Assembly: GCA_026936335.1 (NCBI GenBank)
Contig: JAPMXV010000044.1
Coordinates: 248,001 to 312,000, forward strand
DNA length: 64,000 nt
DNA from: Mantamonas sphyraenae STR306
Taxonomy: Eukaryota > Protista > CRuMs
Direction of reading: 5' to 3'
The notes under the pieces are model-generated. The model worked only from the letters and a program-made list of their open reading frames with translations. It did not search any database and was not told the DNA's origin. Both the position numbers and the translations under genes were made by a program. Each line of letters begins with the position of its first letter. Within the stretch, counting starts at the first letter, position 1. This document shows, piece by piece, positions 16,548-48,981 of this stretch.

Positions 16548-18122
16548 TCACCCACTGCCGTTGAGGATCTCAATGTACTTGTCCAGCCTATGGCACGAGA
16601 CAAAGAGGAAGAGGTTGGACGGCGAGAGGCTGCAGCACCACGAGGTGCAGGAGTGGCAGGTGACCAACTTTTCGCCCGCCACGTGCGTGTAGCCCATGGA
16701 CTGGGGTGGCACCTTGGACACCACATCCGTGCCTGTCTTGGTGGATCCAAGACGGAAGCCATCACCGCTGTTGTCATCGTCGCTGCTGCTGCTGCTGCTG
16801 CTCTTCTTGCTGCTGCGGCGGAAAAACCAAGCGTTCTCGTCGGCCACGTCCTCCTCGTCAGCCTGATCCTCCTCATCGTCCGAGTCGCTGTCGTCCGAGT
16901 CGCTGTCCTGGAGCAACGAGTGGAGCACCTCTTCTTCGGTGGCAGTAGGCACGGCCTGCAACGTGCGCAGCAACTTCAGATGTTCCTGCGGTTCCTTGAG
17001 CATGCGCTCCATCACGTGGCGCTCGTGCTGCTCGTCCTCCGTCTCATTGCTGTCCGTGTCAAACAGACAGCCGCGTGTCTTGTACTGTCCGACATAGCGC
17101 GTGGTCTTGGTGCCAAGTCGCGCGTTGTACTCGCTGGCAAACGTAGCATCGCCCTCACGAGGCGATCCAAAAGTGACGACCTTGCGCACATTGCCGTTGA
17201 GGAAGGTGCTGAGGTCCAGCGCAGCGTAGATGGCGAGCACGCCGCCCAGCGAGTGGCCGCCCATGTGGAAGCGGTAGCCCTGGCTGCGCAGACGCGTCAC
17301 AGTGCTCATGTACTTGCTCGTGCTGCGCACAGAGTTGTACGCAGTCAGGAAGCCGCGGTGGGCCTTGCCACGCACGCACTGAGTGCCGAAGCACGCCTTG
17401 ACGAGACCAACGGCAAAGTTGGTCTGCACCCAGTCCTTCAGAAACTCGCTCCACGAGGACTTTTCAGAGCCGCGGAACATAATGTAGGCATCCTTGGTGC
17501 CCTCCTTGGTCAGGATCATTCCCTCGGCGCCGGACGACGGGCGAAACGCGTGCTCCATCTTGAAGAACGTGTCGCGGCCCGACTGCTTGAAGCGAACACG
17601 CTCACCATCCTTCCAGGGGTTGGAACGATCGTAGGCAAGCTTGGAAAGGTACACATACGTCTTGTCGCCGCTGTACTCGCCGTAGTAGTGGCCGCGCGCG
17701 TCCTTGATTGCACCGTTGTGGACACCAGCGTTGTCAGAATCGGAAATCAGCTCGGCCTGGTCCGGGTCAATCACATGGGTGGCGCGGTACAGCATGCGGG
17801 CAGCTGTGTGTGTGTGTGTGGCCGGGTGAGCAAAGGAAAGGGGGGGTGGTTTTCCACCGAAACACGCAGAATGTGCTGAGCTGGAGGGTTTTTCTCAGGC
17901 GTCCAACGCACCACTGGGACTTCGTTGCACGAGCTGCATGACGTCACCGCCACGGTGAAGCGTGTCTTGAATGCGGTCAAGGGTCATCACGTCCTCGATA
18001 TCCTCGGCGTCGAGGCCGTGCTTTTGGAGCAGTTCCTGGCGCATCTCCAGCAGGGACGGGCGAGCGAGGCATCCTGCAGCCAGAACGACCAGCAATGCAA
18101 TGACTACAGTTGGTCGTGACAT
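16548..18122 (-). CDS. Secreted class-3 lipase; exon 1 18122-~17912 (signal peptide), exon 2 ~17803-16548
   Basis: Signal MSRPTVVIALLVVLAAGCLA; FRGS, HRGF, GHSLGG nucleophile, TFGSPR.G, DVVSKVPP, H..DKY. Confidence 0.9.
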
Positions 18123-18180
18123 GCTGGGTAGGGGTGGTTGTGGGTGTGGTTTGTGTGCATGCCAGGGCGACGGTGAGGCC

Positions 18181-19084
18181 ACAAAAACCCAACCCTCAAA
18201 ACGATGAAGACAATCACTTTTGCAATGACCCTTCTGGTGCTGGTGGCCTTTGCCCAGGCGGACATCTGGTCGTACTGTGGCACGAGTGCTGACCACTTCA
18301 CCATCAAGAACGTGACGATTGTGCCGGACCCGCCCACGAAGAACAGCCACATCAACATCACGGCTGATGGCACCCTGGGTGAGTGCAGAGACGAGTGTGA
18401 AGACGAAGGTGGAGAGTGGCCGGGCACAGAGACGGACGCATAGAGGCTGGAAGGAGTGTGGAAAGAGAGTGCAAGATTCACGCGAAAGAGGAGAGGGCAG
18501 AAAACGGCTTTCGGGCCAACGTAGACACTGACACAGTTGCACGTGCACGCTTCCAATGCACCACACAGACGAGGAAGTGACTGACGGCAAGGCAAACATC
18601 CTGCTGTACTTCAGCGGAATCAAGATTCTGGACAAAACGGTGGGTCAAGTTTGGGTGATGGGGATAAGATTCAACGTTTTGGGCGGGCGAGTGAAGTAGA
18701 AACTGACACATGAGCATGCGGGGGGAACACACAACAGTACGACGCATGCACACTGGACCCGCAGATCAAGTGCCCGTTCCCCAAGGGACCGACGACGCTG
18801 AAGGTGTCTGAGTTTCTGCCGAGCGACGTGCCGAGTGGACACTACACGGGCACGGTGACTCTGAACGACCAGAACAACTCGGAGATCACGTGCATCAAGC
18901 TGGATTTTCATCTGTAAACACCCGTTTTGTGTGTCCAATGCTGTGTGCTGTCTTGTGCGGTGGGGGGTTTGATTTTCACTGGATTTGGGCAAGGTCTTTG
19001 CGGAGGAGGATCATGCTGGTCTGGAGATCCGGGACGTCGCCTGTCTCTGGGTCGACGTCGGGCACCTGAAGGGAATGGTGGGAG
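18181..19084. repeat. Inverted segmental duplication, arm B; includes an orphan fragment of the NBR1-like 3' end (18976-19084, minus strand)
   Basis: SLQVPDVDPETGDVPDLQTSMILLRKDLAQIQ* is encoded identically here and at ~7351-7449. Confidence 0.95.
18204..18917 (+). CDS. Secreted ML-domain protein, copy B; exons 18204-18378, 18569-18639, 18738-18917
   Basis: Same structure as copy A, with intact splice sites and TAA. Confidence 0.88.
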
Positions 19085-19162: not shown

Positions 19163-22100
19163 ATGGGACGCACGCGAGTAACTTCGACACGTGTGTGTAC
19201 ATGCACCATGCTGGTGCTTTTGGGCACACTGGTCCTAATGGTGCAGCCAGGGCACTCGTTTGAGGATCATCCAGACATTCTGCCGTCTGATCACCCTGGC
19301 GTTGAAGATGTGGACATGAGCGGACATCACGGAGACGGGTGCCTGCACGACCACGTGGTGGAGAACATGCGCACCACGCACAAGCCCCAGTATGTGCGTG
19401 TGAAGCACGAGCACGAAGAAGAGGAACAAAAGGGCAGTGTCGGCGCCCGTCGGCTCCTCACTCATCTGCCGTACAACAACATCCGAGTGTACTACGACTA
19501 CTCGAGCATCGATGGAAGTGACTCGAAGCGATGCACATCGAACGGTAAGTGTTTCCTTATGGTGGTGTGCTGTGTGTGTGTGTGTTGGGCATGCGACGTG
19601 TGCGCATTCCCGAAATCCAGTGCGTTTTTACGTTTTGCTCACGCGCGTTCTTTTCGCCGCCACAGGCCAAGTAATCGATGGATACACGTGCACGACCGCC
19701 GACATCCTTGACACCACAAAACGCGACTACTTGAAGAACACGTTGCTCCCGGAGGCCAAGGCATGGATCGACGGGGCCTTCAAGGTCAACCGGGTGTCCG
19801 GAAACCTTGTGCTCACAGGCTCGTCCACCTGCTACCAAGCACCCATCCCGTCGTCGCTGCAAACCACTGGTGCTCCGAACGCAGATATCATCCTAATGGT
19901 GACCGCGCGCCCCATCTCGGGCTCTGCGGTGGCATGGGCCGCCGGCTGCAAGTACGATTCCACGTACGGCCGTCCGATTGCCGGCCACATCAACTTTGGC
20001 CCCAAGAACCTCAAGACGGACGCAGCATCGCGCGCAAGCCAGGTTGGCATTGCCATCCACGAGGTGTCGCATGTGCTGGGCTTCAGCAGCTACTTCTATG
20101 ACAAGTTCCGTGACGCGAGCCACAACGTGCGTCCGCTGTCGCAGGTGAAACAGGACTCGACGCTGTGGGATGCCAATCACGCCATTTCTAAAATCATCAC
20201 GTCGCGTGTGGTTACAGAAACCCGCGCTTATTTCGGATGCAGCAACGCGCCAGGCCTTCAGCTGGAGGACGCTGGCAGCTCGGGTTCGGCAGGGTCGCAC
20301 TGGGACAAACGTCTCATGTATGACGACTGGATGAACCCGAGTGCCGACAGCAACCCAAAGTACACTCGCATCACCTTTGCGTACTTTGAGGACACGGGCC
20401 ACTACCAGATGGACTACACCAAGGTGAGCGAATCGACGTGGGGCAAGGCCAAGGGCTGCGCGTTTCTGAACGACAAGTGTAGCGCATGGCCGTCGAGCTG
20501 GGGCTACTTTTGCTCCCAGACCGGTGTGCCGTACTGCACGGCGGATCGCATGGCGCGCGGGTATTGCGGCATTTCGACGTGGTCAGCCGACCTGCCCACC
20601 TGGAACCAGTACTTCCCGGGTGAGCCACGCAAGGGTGGATCGTCCCAGTATGCAGACTATTGTCCAATCGTGCGAGGGTACAGCAACGGCGACTGCGAGG
20701 TGCCGGCCAACCACATCTCGCAGAAAATCTACGGCCAAACATACGCCACGGGTAGCCGTTGCTTCATGTCGACGGTAATCCAAAGCAACTACCAGGCGCA
20801 GTCGACGTACAATGACCGCTGCTTCCTGCACAGCTGCAGCAACGGCGTTCTGAGCATCACGGTCGGGTCACAAACTCAGGCCTGCCCCACCAACGGTGGC
20901 AACCTGGGTGGCTGGACGGGATACACAGGCAATGTGCAGTGCCCGCCTGCTTCTGATCTCTGTCCCTCTGGCGTCACCTGTCCCGGCGGAGGAAACTGCA
21001 ACGGGCAGGGAACGTGCAACACACAGACCGGCGTGTGCACATGTCAGCAGGATTGGACCGGGTCTGGATGCACGACGGCGTCGACGATTGCCCTGTCCAG
21101 CCTGACACCCAGCTCTGGCACCACGGCGGGTGGTACGAGCGTCACTCTGGCTGGATCCAACTTTAAGAACGATCGCGGACAGATCCGTGTTCGCTTTGGC
21201 ACCAGCGCTGTGAACGGAGCATACGTGAGTGCCACGCGCATCACGGCGACGAGTCCCAGTGGGTCTGCTGGGAACGTGCAGGTGAGCGTGAGCATGAACG
21301 GAGGAACCGAGTATTCTTCATCGACCAGGACGTTCACATACCAGACACCCGCACCGACGTGCCCTGGTGGAGGTAATTGCAACAACCATGGCACGTGCAA
21401 CACGCAGACCGGCGTGTGCACATGCGAACAAGACTGGACCGGGTCTGGATGCACGACGGCGTCGACGATTGCCCTGTCCAGCCTGACACCCAGCTCTGGC
21501 ACTACGGCGGGTGGTACGAGCGTCACTCTGGCTGGATCCAACTTTAAGAACGATCGCGGACAGATCCGTGTGCGCTTTGGCACCAGCGCTGTGAACGGAG
21601 CATACGTGAGCGCCACGCGCATCACGGCGACGAGTCCCAGTGGGTCTGCTGGGAACGTGCAGGTGAGCGTGAGCATGAACGGAGGAACCGAGTATTCTTC
21701 ATCGACCAGGACGTTCACATACCAGACACCCGCACCGACATGCCCTGGTGGAGGTAATTGCAACAACCATGGCACGTGCAACACGCAGACCGGCGTGTGC
21801 ACATGCGAACAAGACTGGACCGGTTCTGGATGCACGACGGCGTCGACGATTGCTCTGTCCAGCCTGACACCCAGCTCTGGCACCACGGCGGGTGGTACGA
21901 GCGTCACTCTGGCTGGATCCAACTTTAAGAACGATCGCGGACAGATCCGTGTTCGCTTTGGCACCAGCGCTGTGAACGGAGCATACGTGAGTGCCACGCG
22001 CATCACGGCGACGAGTCCCAGTGGGTCTGCTGGGAACGTGCAGGTGAGCGTGAGCATGAACGGAGGAACCGAGTATTCTTCATCGACCAGGACGTTCACA

Positions 22101-25100
22101 TACCAGACACCCGCACCGACGTGCCCTGGTGGAGGTAATTGCAACAACCATGGCACGTGCAACACGCAGACCGGCGTGTGCACATGCGAACAAGACTGGA
22201 CCGGGTCTGGATGCACGACGGCGTCGACGATTGCCCTGTCCAGCCTGACACCCAGCTCTGGCACTACGGCGGGTGGTACGAGCGTCACTCTGGCTGGATC
22301 CAACTTTAAGAACGATCGCGGACAGATCCGTGTGCGCTTTGGCACCAGCGCTGTGAACGGAGCATACGTGAGCGCCACGCGCATCACGGCGACGAGTCCC
22401 AGTGGGTCTGCTGGGAACGTGCAGGTGAGCGTGAGCATGAACGGAGGAACCGAGTATTCTTCATCGACCAGGACGTTCACATACCAGACACCCGCACCGA
22501 CGTGCCCTGGTGGAGGAAACTGCAACGGAGAGGGAACCTGCAACACGCAGACCGGCGTGTGCACGTGTCAGCAGGATTGGACCGGAGCAGGATGCACGAC
22601 GGCGTCGACGATTGTCGTGTCTGGCTTGTCGCCAAACACGGGCACCACAGCAGGCGGCACGAGCGTCACTGTGTCTGGTTCCAACTTTAAGAACGACCGC
22701 GGCCAGATCCGTGTTCGATTCGGTCCCAACACGGTGGACGGAGCGTACGTGAGCGCCACGCGCATCACAGCCACGAGTCCCAGCCACAGTGCGGGCAGCG
22801 TGCAGGTGAGCGTGAGCATGAACGGAGGCACCGAGTTTTCCGCCTCGAGCCAGGCATTTACGTACCAAACGCCGACGCCGACGTGCCCTGGTGGAGGCAA
22901 TTGCAACAACCATGGCACGTGCAACACGCAGACAGGTGTGTGCACCTGCGAGCAGGATTGGGCCGGAGCAGGATGCACGACCGCATCCACCATCGCCGTG
23001 TCCAGCCTGACCCCCAACAGTGGCGTGTTGGCAGGTGGTACAACAGTGACCGTGACGGGATCCAACTTTAAGAACGACCGCGGCCAGATTCGTGTGCGCT
23101 TTGGCACCAACACTGTGAACGGAGCGTATGTGAGCGCCACGCGCATCACGGCCACCAGCCCGAGCCACACCACAGCGGGTGGTGTGCAGGTGAGCGTGAG
23201 CATGAACGGAGGGACAGAGTTTTCAACGTCGACAGCCACGTACACGTACATTGCCAACACGCCGCAGTGTCCCGGCGGAGGCAATTGCAACGGACAGGGT
23301 ACGTGCAACACGCAGACGGGTGTGTGCACCTGCTTCCAGGACTGGGACGGCCAGGACTGCACGACGGCATCGCCGGTGTCGATTGCATCGTTCTCACCGA
23401 CCGAGGGACGCATTGGTGGTGGCACTGCCCTCACGCTGAACGGAGCCAATTTCAAGAACGACCGCGGTCAGATTCGCGTTCGTCTGGGTGAGGCCGAGGT
23501 GGATGGAACGTTTGTGAGCGGCACACGCATCACGGCCACGACGCCAGCTGTGGCCTCTGCCGCCGATGTGTACCCCAAGGTGTCGCTGAACGGAGGCGCA
23601 GAGTATGCCAACGCCACGTCAGTGTTTGCATACCGTGTTTCTGTGTGTGGTGACACGATTGTGGATGCCCCGGAGGACTGTGATCATCCGGGTGCCGCGT
23701 GTTGCGACGCAACCACTTGCATGTTCCTCAACGCCACACGCGTGTGCCGCGCCAGCGTAGGAGAATGCGACGTGGCGGACAACTGCACGGGATCATCGCC
23801 GTACTGTCCTGCCGACGTGCTGCGCGGCTCCGATTGGATCTGCCGCTTTCCGACCTCGCTGTGTGATGCGCCGGAAAAGTGCGACGGGTGGACGAGCTCA
23901 TGCGCAGGCAACAAGATCCACGTGGAGGGCGCAGCGTGCAACGACAGCAACGTGTGCACAACAGGCGATGCTTGCAACGCTGGCGGCGTGTGTGTGGGGT
24001 GAGCTGACCGCATGCGGGTGCACCAGCGACGCACAGTGCACCACGGCGTCCAGCTGCCAAACGGCAACATGTGTCAACAACACCTGCGTGTACACGGACA
24101 AGGCGGACGGCACAGCGTGCAGCAATGGCGACACGTGTGCCTCCTCGGCGTCGTGTAGCGCAGGAGTCTGTGTCTCGCGTTGCAACAACGATTGCAACGG
24201 CCACGGAACCTGTTGCAACGACGTGTGCACGTGCGACCACGGCTGGCAGCAGGCAGTCAACTGCACGGTGGGACCGCCTGCGCTGGCCAGTGGTGACACA
24301 CACTCGGCTGCCATTTCCGCTCGCACCTATGAGTTTATCATGGTGCCCGTGGCCGCCCTGCAGGCTGTGGCAGGTGGCAGCAGTACGTCGCGTCGTCTGC
24401 TTCAGGCGGCAGCGGAGGCTGTCAACGTGAGCGTGACCCTCAATCTGCGCACTGTTGGCAACCCGGAGGACGTGGCCATGTTCATCAACCCGGGCCGTGC
24501 TGCCGGCGCCACCGATGCCGCGTGGTCGTCCAACGGCCAGTCGGACATCACTGTGCTCACGCCGTCCAACTTGGATCTGTACGTGTCGGTGTACGCATTC
24601 GTGGCCACCAACTTCTCCCTGGCCACCGAGGTCAAGGCGGTGCCTGCTGCCGCGGCCGCGCCCAAGAAGGCACCTGCGCCGTACGATTGGCTGCAGGACC
24701 CAATTGTGATTGGGGCCGGAGCAGGCGGCCTGTCCCTCTTGGTCATCCTGGCCGGCGTAGGCCTGTACTGGCGCCACAAGCGCAACGGCGGAGGCAGCAT
24801 CAGCGGCGCCTGGAAGGGTTCGTTCACCAACAAGTATGCCACCAACAAGAAGCCCAAGAAGGGCATCCAGAGGGACAACAGTGGGACGAGCAATCGGGCT
24901 GCGTCGTATGCGCTTGGAAACAACAACAACAGCAGCAACAGCAACAAGCCGAGCGGTGGAAACAGCTTGGAGATGCGCCCGTTGGTGACGGGTGGTGCAG
25001 CAGGTGGCGCAGCAGGTGGCGCAGGAGTTGGTGGGGGTTCTGTGCAGAGCGCACGGGTGCTGTACGACTTTGAGGCACGCAGTGGGGCAGAGATGAGCGT

Positions 25101-25436
25101 GCGTGCGGGCCAGATGGTGGATGTGGTGGAGACGGGGCCCGAGTGGACTCGTGTGAAGCCCAAGGGTGGTTGGCAACAGGGCAGCGTGCCGACAAACTAC
25201 CTGGAGATGGTGCGCCACACACCGGCACACTCTGCTGCACCACGCATCGGCATTGTGCCCACACCGCAGGTCAGGCAGCAGCAACCCAAGCCAACTCCTC
25301 AGCAGAGCAAGCCCACACCCCAGCCCAAGCCGAAGCCCAAGCAGCAGAAGCCCAAGCCGCAACCCAAGCAGAACAGCAACAGCAACAGCAGCAACAGCAA
25401 CGCGAATCCCTTTGGCGTCACGTTGCGTTCGACCAA

Positions 25437-25471
<35 letters not shown>

Positions 25472-25656
25472 GCAGCAGCTCGTCGGGCAATGTGCGCATC
25501 CGTGCCATGTATTCACACACTGGCCGCGACGCAAACGAGTTGTCCTTCAACGAGGGCGATGTCATGTCCGGTGTGCGTCTTGACAACGACTGGTTCGAAG
25601 CCACGCTTCGAGGCAAGAAAGGGTTGGTTCCTGCAACGTACGTGAAGCAAATGTAA
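19163..25656 (+). CDS. Leishmanolysin/GP63 (M8) metalloprotease with 7x(EGF-IPT/TIG), disintegrin-like domain, Cys-rich repeats, EGF, TM and 2x SH3; intron 19545-19665; frame break at ~23996-23999
   Basis: Signal, pro-region CLHD, HEVSHVLGF, LEDAGSSGSAGSHWDKR, ADYCP. Repeats CPGGGNCN..G.C..GVCTC..DWTG.GC followed by IPT. CGDTIVDAPEDCD..VCRASVGECDVADNCTG; TM; ARVLYDFEA..W..GSVPTNY and RAMYSH..ELSF..W..GLVPATYV. Confidence 0.9.
20979..23640 (+). repeat. Coding tandem array, 381-bp unit x7 (first four nearly identical)
   Basis: Unit starts at ~20979, 21360, 21741, 22122, 22503, 22884, 23268. Confidence 0.95.
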
Positions 25657-25664
25657 GAGATCTT

Positions 25665-26696
25665 TCATTCTGGCAGCAAACCGTCAATCCACCGCGCCAT
25701 CCACTCAAACGTAGCAATGGTGATAGCTGTGTTGGGGGCGATCCAGAACATACTGCGCACGAGGGAGCCTCGCATGAGACCTGCGAGTCCCTCTTCTCGT
25801 GCGATGCGCACCAGCGCCTGCGAAGGAGACGAGTATTGAAAATTGTGTCCATGTTCGCTTTGGACCTGGTATCGAGTCTTGGCAATGTCCAGGGGATTGG
25901 TGGCAGCGCCTGCAAGCGACCCGGCTGCGTACCCACATCCCAAGTTGCCCCAGAAGGGCAGATTCTGTGCATCTGCGTCCATCATGCGAGCCAACATCAG
26001 CTTTGCGTGCTCGTAGGTGGCAAAGTAGACGCCTGCAAAGGGTCCGTAGACAGCCACGCCCATCCAGAAGCCCTTGAACAGTGTGCCTATCCCCTCCTGT
26101 CGCACAATGGTCGTGGCTGTGTGCAACGAGCCACGGTACACCACATTGCCCGATGGATTCATGTCCTGCACTTGCAGGCGGCCCTTGATGACGTCCATGG
26201 GCACCCAAAGGCTGGCACCGGCCACCTCGGCCACGAAGCCAGCGATCATCTGTGCGGCAGCTGTGGATTCGCCGCCATTTGCATCAGCAAAGTGCTGCTT
26301 GAGTGAACGGTACACTCCAAAGTAGAGACCGTGCGCAGGACCAGTCAGCATGGCCACTGGGAGAATGCGGGGCGATTCGGAGTCAGCACGGATTTCGTCG
26401 CATTTTCACCGTGTCTCGCTACGTCCACAGGCGCAACGGGCGGGTGTGCAATCGGTACGCTCAAACCCACCTGCCCCAAAACCCCGGTACAAGCCGCGGA
26501 TGCCATTGTCACGCATCACCTTGGCCAAGAGGTTGCCGACACCGAGCGACTTTTCGCCGCCGCGTTGCATCATGATCTGCGCCCGCAATGTGTCCATGGG
26601 GTGAACCACAAGGTCTGCTGTGATTCCTGCGGCACACCCAGCCAAACCCTGCACCAGCACATATCGCTGTGTTTGTACTGGAGCCTGGTTCTCCAT
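25665..26696 (-). CDS. Mitochondrial carrier (SLC25; mitoferrin/SLC25A44-like), one intron
   Basis: Three carrier signatures PMDTLRAQ, PMDVIKGRLQ, PLDIAKTRYQ; GPAHGLYF. Confidence 0.9.
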
Positions 26697-47838: not shown

Positions 47839-48981
47839 ATGACAAGCACGAGAACGGCGGGGGTTTCCACAGCTCTGGGGCTGGCATTGGTGCTGCTGCT
47901 GTGCTCACAGGTGGTCCACACGGTGGCAAACACAGAGAAAGAGGCTTTGAAAGAACAGACAGCGACAGGGGAAGCCCAGGGCAAGAATGAGACGGAAGAA
48001 GCACAGGTCGTGGAGCATTGTTCGCGGCAGCAGTCGCGTCTTGTGCGATACAGACTGAATGAGGTGAGTGGCAGGCATCCAACGAGAGCTGCACACGACA
48101 TGGTGGATGTTCAAGGGGCATTCGAGAAAGGATGTGCGTGGGGGCGACGCGTGAAGAGGGGGTGGTGGATTCCGGCGGCCGGCTGACGCAGGGATGGGCC
48201 ACCCATGCAGTTCTTTTATCCGACAGTGGAACGTGAGGGATACACACTGCCGAGTCGGTGTCCGTTGAGGAAGGAGCTGGACTTTGTGCGGGAGCACGAG
48301 GAGAGCAAGAGTTCGTCGTACCAGTACAAGTGGAAGTGCAAGCGGTGTGGCAAGGCCTTCAAGGGGGAGAAGTACCTGGACAAGCACTTGGCGAACAAGC
48401 ACCCGTTCACGGTGGAAGAGATCACAGGCAAGGTGTGTCTGGCGGACTTTGCCGACGTGACGTTGCACGTGCCACTCACAGGAGCACACCTGAACCAGCA
48501 TCCGGACGACAGAGAGTATGAGAACTGGCTGCAGGAGCAGGCACGCGTCAATCGCGCCTGTTCGCCGGCCAAGATGGAAGAGAGGCGATTCCGATGCCAG
48601 GCGGTGCTGTACCGCTGTTTCCCGGCGGATGACGGCCCACTGGCAAACCAGCTGCACGAACTGTTTTACAAACAGTTCTGTAGCAAGCTGGTATGTGCAT
48701 CGGGCGGCTCTGCAGGCGGCGGAATGGGTGCAGGAGGCACCGGAGGCGGCGGCGTGGGAACACAACGCAATGCCATCCCCAGCACACGGGAAGGGGTCTT
48801 TCAGAGGTTGCACCTGGCCATGGTGGTGATTGTCGTGCTTGTTCTGGTGGCTTTCTACCTGGGCTACTACTTTTACTACCGCGAGGTGAATCTGGCCAGC
48901 GAGCTGCAGCGTCTGCGGGAGTCGCGGCACTCGCTTCGAAACAGTCTGTTTGGCAGAAAGAAAAAGGTAAAAGCATATTGA
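47839..48981 (+). CDS. Signal-peptide, luminal C2H2 zinc-finger, single-TM protein; intron 48064-48210
   Basis: [46 protein letters not shown]-terminal TM plus basic tail. Confidence 0.8.

Follow-up and report, generated by a model that had tools for sequence, protein, structure and literature searches.

Leishmania GP63, a zinc protease of the leishmanolysin (M8) family, is glycosylphosphatidylinositol (GPI)-anchored and has no further domains, and the tails of ADAM proteases carry proline-rich ligands for SH3 domains. The tails of furin/kexin convertases steer cycling between the trans-Golgi network, endosomes and the cell surface by short linear sorting motifs rather than by a folded SH3 domain, and yeast Fus1 (type I) and Sho1 (four transmembrane segments) are membrane proteins with a cytoplasmic SH3 domain that recruits proline-rich partners. 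Here we describe a locus of Mantamonas sphyraenae STR306 (CRuMs) with points of likeness to each of these systems. It lies in a 64,000-nucleotide stretch of contig JAPMXV010000044.1 (assembly GCA_026936335.1, positions 248,001 to 312,000; hereafter the window, in whose coordinates all positions are given unless another contig is named). Three open frames on the forward strand between 19163 and 25656, taken from the list of open reading frames (ORFs) and their translation, read together as one long protein. The best joint explanation of our results, which we consider probable, is that the locus is one intact gene for a type I membrane zinc protease of about 2,120 residues, proteolytically processed, with a disintegrin-like exosite and with a tail that it shares with other proteases of the same genome.

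An earlier note on this DNA listed a signal segment, a propeptide with the motif CLHD, two RRLL motifs, an intact M8 domain, seven EGF plus IPT units, a disintegrin-like domain, cysteine-rich (Cys-rich) repeats, an EGF domain, a transmembrane (TM) helix and two SH3 domains separated by a linker, and all of these features were recovered by Pfam and PDB searches, hydropathy and tandem-repeat analysis (TRF) (Table 1). The note needs correcting in that the coding frame is broken at two places, 19545-19665 and the TGA at 24000-24002. All searches described here were run on the exons or frames separately and not on a joined full-length model.

The catalytic domain matched Peptidase_M8 (PF01457) at 2.6e-87, with 294 bits against a cut-off of 21, over model positions 97-524 of 529, and aligned end to end with the structure of Leishmania leishmanolysin (1LML, 1.2e-51). 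In this alignment HEVSH, GSAGSH and DDWMNP pair with HEMAH, GSAGSH and DELMAP of 1LML, which represent the HExxH motif, the third His ligand and the Met turn, and H131, E132, H135 and H211 are invariant in our alignment of M8 proteins (A1). Judged by these residues, the M8 catalytic site is intact and the protein belongs to family M8, not to the ADAMs. Upstream of this domain, exon 1 contains a hydrophobic signal-like segment (residues about 8-30), the sole one detected by hydropathy, followed by a propeptide with a predicted cysteine switch, GDGCLHDH, whose Cys codon is at 19340-19342. Paralogs have HRCIHD and HHCLHD at this position, and the consensus in A1 is HxCIHD...RR...IRI.

The M8 domain is followed by a stalk of tandem units beginning at 20979, 21360, 21741, 22122, 22503, 22884 and 23268, in which Pfam recognized seven TIG (7.8e-97) and seven EGF_2 (3.9e-28) domains. 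Units 1-4, at the distal end, resemble one another almost completely: among units 2-4 protein identity is 100% and DNA identity 98.4-99.7%, and divergence grows through units 5-7 toward the membrane. NCBIfam gave a single match over cut-off, CoaZ_rpt_PGGG (32.2 bits), in the last TIG unit, and none for the disintegrin-like or Cys-rich parts. The disintegrin-like domain matched Pfam Disintegrin (PF00200) over model positions 30-75 only, at 2.5e-6 and 28.6 bits in hmmscan, which is under the cut-off of 35.1. In a six-frame search of the genome the same profile scored 36.4 bits, over cut-off, and this was its sole match in the genome. In the PDB nearly all matches to this part were P-III snake-venom metalloproteinases, apart from three glycogen synthases (E about 0.9), and the short 'K-like' protein 3K7N ranked first (4.6e-7), with the aligned pattern CGD...CCDATTC...CR..GECD..NCTGSS.YCPAD. 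The earlier description of the protein as an ADAM-like protease therefore holds in part: the order of its modules parallels that of an ADAM, M8 taking the place of M12B, which makes the analogy apt for the layout of the predicted protein, and homology is confined to the disintegrin-like module.

The adjoining Cys-rich part is an A-B-A repeat of the same kind as in two database proteins, P0041 and P0010, and the ADAM Cys-rich domain PF08516 was absent among the Pfam matches of the protein. P0010, a 1018-residue metagenomic protein, has about 19 tandem copies of the disintegrin loop unit alone (CR..AGVCDVAENCTGSS..CP.D), and by its sequence this loop sub-module multiplies independently outside ADAMs. 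Alignments of the membrane-proximal EGF domain extended into the juxtamembrane domain both with P0110, a database protein carrying a PPC domain (PF04151), and with P0005, a distantly related M8 protein (31% identical) of a public assembly, in which the same unit of EGF plus beta-domain that lies near the membrane here is found downstream of M8. The juxtamembrane domain gave no Pfam match of its own, and a single-sequence AF2 model of the EGF and juxtamembrane part was discarded (mean pLDDT 41.6). Neither the disintegrin-like/Cys-rich part nor the exon-3 ectodomain had a paralog in searches of the organism's own genome.

The tail contains a P/Q/K-rich stretch alongside two SH3 domains of its own, in a protein that also has EGF and TM segments. 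Two stretches of the tail matched Pfam SH3_9 (1.4e-19, 70.1 bits) and SH3_1 (2.6e-18, 65.8 bits), and PDB matches of the two domains to Grb2, Eps8, myosin I and p40/p47phox ranged from 1e-7 to 2e-10; by these matches both are canonical eukaryotic SH3 domains. Inspection of 30 of the 73 SH3 matches in the genome identified two further ectoproteases with a tail of this type, each encoded by one uninterrupted ORF. The first (L037:1117-3414, forward strand, contig C45 about 304314-306611; 766 residues) is a kexin-like convertase with Peptidase_S8 (3.9e-44), a P-domain (2.1e-28), a TM helix, a Gly-rich segment, a PxxP stretch and a C-terminal SH3 domain. The other (L077:1222-3534, forward strand, contig C3 about 171221-173533; 771 residues) is a metzincin-like protease with HELGHNWGFRH and weak matches to Reprolysin_2/4/5, followed by PKD, EGF, TIG, a TM helix, a Gly-rich segment, PPVPQR and SH3. 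The SH3 domains of these two proteins are 58% identical, a PxxP stretch, including PPVPQR, stands directly N-terminal to SH3 in both, and the tails of all three proteases can be aligned from the TM helix through SH3. The TM/Gly-rich/SH3 tail is, on this alignment, a cassette common to three proteases and not unique to the protein studied here. Thus, the two SH3 domains in which the earlier note saw a special receptor feature were confirmed, but because the same cassette recurs on kexin-like and metzincin-like proteases its sequence distribution suggests a shared anchoring or sorting module for ectoproteases instead. The remaining inspected SH3 proteins were cytosolic adaptors and a myosin-I-like tail. 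In addition, a 1971-residue ORF (L033:3703-9615, reverse strand, contig C51) combines FG-GAP, TIG and ephrin-receptor-like repeats with a weak C-terminal SH3 match and an apparent block of several membrane spans, the latter seen by eye; its HTHTHT/SLTHSLTH stretch resembles in-frame read-through of a CA-rich intron.

The suggestion that this architecture had not been described was borne out by our database searches, since no protein combining M8 with SH3 or M8 with a disintegrin domain was found in large protein databases. Nine relatives of at most 39% identity were returned when the M8 region was used in a word-indexed search of proteins 794-2527 residues long; these had M8 alone, M8 with EGF or M8 with PA, and a profile of 16 M8 proteins matched M8 alone or M8 with EGF, PA, TIG, PPC or PF10342, none with SH3 or Disintegrin. 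Conversely, the disintegrin-like query returned mainly metagenomic proteins with multiple PF00200 repeats, none with M8; the dockerin/cohesin partners of these proteins and one Deltaproteobacteria label suggest a bacterial source. An exhaustive phmmer search of 1.84 billion representatives with the C-terminal half identified no ortholog, its matches being for the most part generic adaptors with several SH3 domains, besides a few proteins with Cys-repeats or EGF, and the ESM Atlas held no look-alike (best score 0.79). The protein itself was absent from the databases searched, no Reprolysin (PF01421) match was obtained anywhere in the genome in a profile search run without a positive control, and none of the papers searched joins Mantamonas with leishmanolysin. 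Within the limits of sequence searches, the domain combination appears to be new to the databases, and the protein is a real, lineage-specific variant of a membrane-anchored leishmanolysin.

Comparison with the other M8 genes of the genome places this variant in its family. In five of the six tested, M8 is followed by one to six TIG domains, and the protein ends either in a TM helix and short tail or in a hydrophobic GPI-like segment; M8+TIG+TM is, by sequence, the norm for the family. The closest paralog of the M8 domain (42% identity; L012:1318-3996, forward strand, contig C3 about 300308-302986) has two bacterial-type SH3_3 domains after M8 and no TM helix. The family also points to a route of activation. 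RRLL occurs twice in the protein against 0.005 expected from composition, at 19448-19459 at the end of the propeptide and at 24391-24402 in the juxtamembrane domain, and in three M8 paralogs the position of the former is occupied by RKLL, KRLL and RRLL, about 10 residues ahead of the mature domain's first strand. Site-1 protease (S1P) recognizes RRLL and RRIL, and its consensus is R-(R/K/H)-L-(A/L/S/T/F) (PMC2685025). The genome encodes an S1P (MBTPS1) ortholog (L038:1501-2283, reverse strand, contig C19 14320-15102) whose catalytic domain matched the human enzyme at 2.9e-116 and subtilisins at 1e-27, so that an S1P-type motif at the predicted pro/mature boundary and the candidate enzyme are both present. 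Because this R-[RK]-L-L type boundary is conserved, the motif is known for S1P and an ortholog exists, we infer that the organism's S1P would activate the zymogen in the secretory pathway by cutting after R-R-L-L and so removing the propeptide with its cysteine switch. Cleavage at the second, near-membrane RRLL may allow the same enzyme to shed the ectodomain, leaving a TM-SH3 stub.

Whether these parts form one protein depends on the two breaks in the coding frame. M. sphyraenae is diploid with mainly mono-exonic genes, and the STR306 genome was assembled with FALCON from PacBio RS II reads, polished with Racon and Pilon, into 78 primary contigs of 25.06 Mb in total with 59.19% GC (PMC10492846); the GC content of the window is about 59%. 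At this GC content a naive scan of the window for GT..AG pairs and open frames was too noisy to yield a distribution of intron lengths. The break at 19545-19665 is a bona fide intron as judged from the spliced product, since the junction ...CTSN-G-QVIDGYTC... agrees with ...CNSV-G-QVL...YTC... of the uninterrupted paralog L012. The intactness of the predicted single gene then hinges on the break at 24000, where the upstream frame ends ...GTG GGG TGA (24000-24002) and the +1 frame, open from 23863, runs to 25656. A coding-potential scan of the 64-kb window identified 24000 as the sole direct +1 junction of coding-like frames at a homopolymer. Elsewhere in the window, at 48979 on the forward strand, two coding-like frames join in the sequence ...TAT TGA ATG GAC..., where the stop immediately precedes an ATG in the +1 frame; instead of a frameshift, this may mark the point at which two genes adjoin.

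For the break at 24000 we regard a one-base frame discrepancy at GGGG-TGA as the most likely cause, be it an error of assembly or a single allele of the diploid; the next 28 nucleotides (nt) are predicted to be coding. The polished PacBio RS II origin of the assembly is in keeping with this. We read 23999-24026 as coding because its nine codons have 89% GC at third positions (GC3), compared with 72-76% in the exons, and because the encoded ELTACGCTS falls within the Cys-rich repeat; its total GC is 68%, compared with 53% in intron 1. A one-base shift is favored because the register of the repeat is kept only if these 28 nt are coding and one base is in excess. In a hidden Markov model (HMM) built from the Cys-repeats of P0041, the frame-2 piece aligned to its final residue, at unit position 25, and the frame-3 match began at residue 8 (model position 33) with an envelope from residue 2, which extrapolates to a take-over at about position 26-27, and excision of 23999-24026 would cost about nine repeat positions, including a conserved Cys. 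A single polypeptide across 19163-25656 is also the natural reading of the sequence on other grounds. The upstream part has a signal peptide and lacks an anchor and the downstream part, which contains the sole TM helix detected by hydropathy (exon 3, the last frame) and the cytoplasmic tail, lacks a convincing start or signal; five of the six tested M8 paralogs end in a TM helix or GPI-like segment after M8 and TIG; and P0005 has its EGF and beta-domain unit downstream of M8. Several points weigh against this reading. As assembled, the upstream frame stops at the TGA, which would yield a secreted protease; the identity of the bases at 23996-24002 is that of the assembled sequence; no ortholog or paralog spanning the break was found in the own-genome or database searches; and the repeat-register argument draws on one distant bacterial-type repeat protein at HMM scores of 14-16 bits. 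Of the supporting features, the PPC-like label of the juxtamembrane domain is weak, and the KRLL of one paralog falls outside the strict, arenavirus-derived S1P consensus.

The stop at 24000 could instead be real, whether from a recent frameshift mutation or as one of two alleles, in which case the gene would encode a secreted M8/stalk/disintegrin protease ending ...GVCVG and the TM-SH3 part would be either a remnant that died very recently or a small type I protein in its own right, with its start at ATG 23965. The Pilon-polished assembly does show the TGA, a heterozygous allele is possible in a diploid organism, secreted forms exist in the family, as indicated by the absence of a TM helix from L012, and the in-frame ATG, 35 nt 5' of the stop, is followed by a short hydrophobic stretch (MLATLAACVWG...) that could form a marginal signal peptide. 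However, this candidate has no charged n-region and about nine hydrophobic residues, it would be unusual for a promoter and start to lie within another gene's coding region, and the downstream frame holds 552 intact codons with coding-type usage and two SH3 domains at 1e-18 to 1e-19. The break also falls inside a Cys-rich repeat whose register carries on in the other frame, and we regard a real stop as unlikely. Removal of 23999-24026 as a 28-nt spliceosomal intron (GTGAGC...CTGAC...CACCAG), which would join ...GVCVG to DAQCTT... in frame, is very unlikely: despite its GT-AG ends, branch-like CTGAC and correct phase, such an intron would be four times shorter than intron 1, verified at 121 nt, its donor would stand only 3 nt from the branch-like motif, GTGAGC is frequent by chance within the gene, and the base composition and the loss of repeat positions described above both argue against it. 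We also rejected a longer intron, such as 23999-24122 (124 nt), since its removal would take out sequence that matches the Cys-repeat HMM in frame. Programmed +1 ribosomal frameshifting at GGG-UGA, with termination giving a secreted form and slippage an anchored, SH3-tailed form from the same mRNA, would fit the homopolymeric codon immediately before the stop and the exact retention of repeat register in the +1 product. Nevertheless, such frameshifting has low prior odds outside ciliates such as Euplotes, the window contains a single homopolymer +1 junction of this kind between coding-like frames, a one-base insertion in ...GTGGGTGAG... gives the same picture trivially, and no stimulatory element was seen, although no search was aimed at one; we consider this reading highly improbable. 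That 23997-24002 is a programmed site giving two forms per mRNA, as one instance of a wider use of +1 frameshifting next to stop codons in a lineage remote from ciliates, is scarcely to be expected. A one-base discrepancy in an otherwise intact gene therefore remains our preferred reading.

For the intact protein, the TM/Gly-rich/SH3 cassette may tie at least three ectoproteases to proline-rich cortical, endocytic or phagosomal partners and in this way control the surface site or compartment where they act, and the disintegrin-like and Cys-rich part may provide an adhesive or substrate-targeting exosite, as in ADAMs. The direct coupling to actin or endocytic machinery and the role in prey capture put forward in the earlier note are carried here as a hypothesis only. 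A different emphasis would make the protein mainly an adhesion or signalling receptor, whose disintegrin-like loop binds an integrin-like or prey partner and whose SH3 domains trigger actin-driven engulfment, with proteolysis secondary. The ADAM-type ECD loop, the long stalk and the resemblance of the two SH3 domains to those of Grb2, Eps8, myosin-I and p47/p40phox would suit such a receptor, but the M8 catalytic site is fully intact, and the tail recurs on two other proteases, the kexin-like convertase and the metzincin-like metalloprotease, whose adhesive modules are limited to EGF/TIG/PKD; this recurrence points to protease sorting. We consider a primarily receptor function rather unlikely, and favor a membrane-anchored protease whose tail would set its location.

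Table 1. Predicted features of the M8 protease locus (window coordinates).
Feature	Position	Strand	Basis and remarks
Exon 1	19163..19544	+	Start ATG, signal-like segment, propeptide, first RRLL, start of mature domain (IRVYYDY); translation and hydropathy
Intron 1	19545..19665	+	121 nt, GTAAGT...CCACAG, phase 1, 53% GC
M8 (leishmanolysin) catalytic domain	19683..20966	+	HEVSH 20058-20072; third His ligand (SHW) 20298-20300
Stalk, seven tandem EGF+IPT/TIG units of 381-384 bp	20979..23660 (end about)	+	TRF period 381; Pfam
Short disintegrin-like domain, ADAM-type ECD loop (CRASVGECDVADNC)	23640..23903	+	Pfam, PDB, genome search
Cys-rich A-B-A repeat module, crosses the frame break	23904..24180	+	HMM from P0041 repeats
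Frame break, GGGG then TGA	23996..24002	+	Sequence; ORF list; coding-potential scan
Membrane-proximal EGF	24181..24264	+	Pfam EGF_Teneurin 0.0048, under cut-off; BLASTP to EGF units of P0110 and P0005
Juxtamembrane beta-rich domain, possibly PPC-like	24265..24696	+	Second RRLL 24391-24402; weak basis
Single TM helix, then RHKR	24697..24768	+	Exon-3 residues 224-246; hydropathy
SH3 domain 1, predicted cytoplasmic	25054..25194	+	Pfam SH3_1/SH3_9; PDB Grb2, Eps8, p47phox, SNX9
P/Q/K-rich and N/S-rich low-complexity linker	25195..25503	+	Translation; short tandem repeats
SH3 domain 2 and stop codon	25504..25656	+	Best SH3_9 stretch; PDB Grb2, myosin I, p40phox

A mitochondrial carrier gene (25665-26357, reverse strand; Mito_carr 3.7e-45) is convergent with the protease gene; the two stop codons are 9 nt apart and the 3' untranslated regions of the carrier and protease genes must therefore overlap. 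Upstream, the reverse strand encodes a class-3 lipase (16551-17795; Lipase_3 6.8e-16) and an ORF without a Pfam match (17898-18635); nothing seen here pointed to their co-regulation with the protease gene.

If the gene is intact, the ADAM plan, that is, a zymogen metalloprotease with a disintegrin-like exosite, Cys-rich and EGF modules, a TM helix and a signalling tail, would have arisen independently on a different metzincin scaffold in CRuMs, a lineage that branches beside Amorphea. Perhaps the more useful point is that the presence of one cassette on M8, kexin-type S8 and another metzincin protease suggests a lineage-specific use of SH3-proline interactions to position extracellular proteolysis, an idea open to test in a culturable bacterivore with a near-complete genome. 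Likewise, the R-[RK]-L-L boundary and the S1P ortholog offer a concrete and testable route of activation and shedding. Newly sequenced protist lineages often show odd domain combinations, and no long-standing open question is touched by this one.

Compared with ADAMs and P-III snake-venom metalloproteinases, the Mantamonas protein has the same order of propeptide cysteine switch, zinc metalloprotease, disintegrin-like xCD loop, Cys-rich part, EGF, TM helix and tail, and its disintegrin-like module is homologous by sequence, 3K7N being the best match. It differs from ADAMs in that its catalytic domain is M8, not M12B, it has no ADAM_CR match, seven EGF+TIG units stand between the protease and the disintegrin-like domain, and its tail contains SH3 domains. 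With GP63 and invadolysin (M8) it shares full-length homology to 1LML, the HExxH motif, the third His, the Met turn and the propeptide cysteine-switch motif, whereas the M8 relatives in the databases have M8 alone or with EGF, PA, TIG or PPC and neither a disintegrin-like nor an SH3 domain. The M8+TIG+TM family of its own genome resembles it in signal, propeptide, R[RK]LL-type motif, M8, TIG stalk and TM helix; these paralogs, however, have one to six TIG domains without interleaved EGF and tails of about 20-45 residues, and they lack the disintegrin-like domain, the Cys-rich module and SH3 domains of the type found here. For the tail, Fus1 and Sho1 provide a parallel in that SH3 is attached directly to an integral membrane protein, but they have no protease ectodomain, whereas the Mantamonas cassette is found on three proteases of different catalytic classes. 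Finally, the furin/kexin convertases are likewise type I membrane proteases whose tail sets their location, and the kexin-like enzyme of Mantamonas itself carries the SH3 cassette; the difference is that the known convertase tails use linear motifs, whereas a folded SH3 domain is present here.

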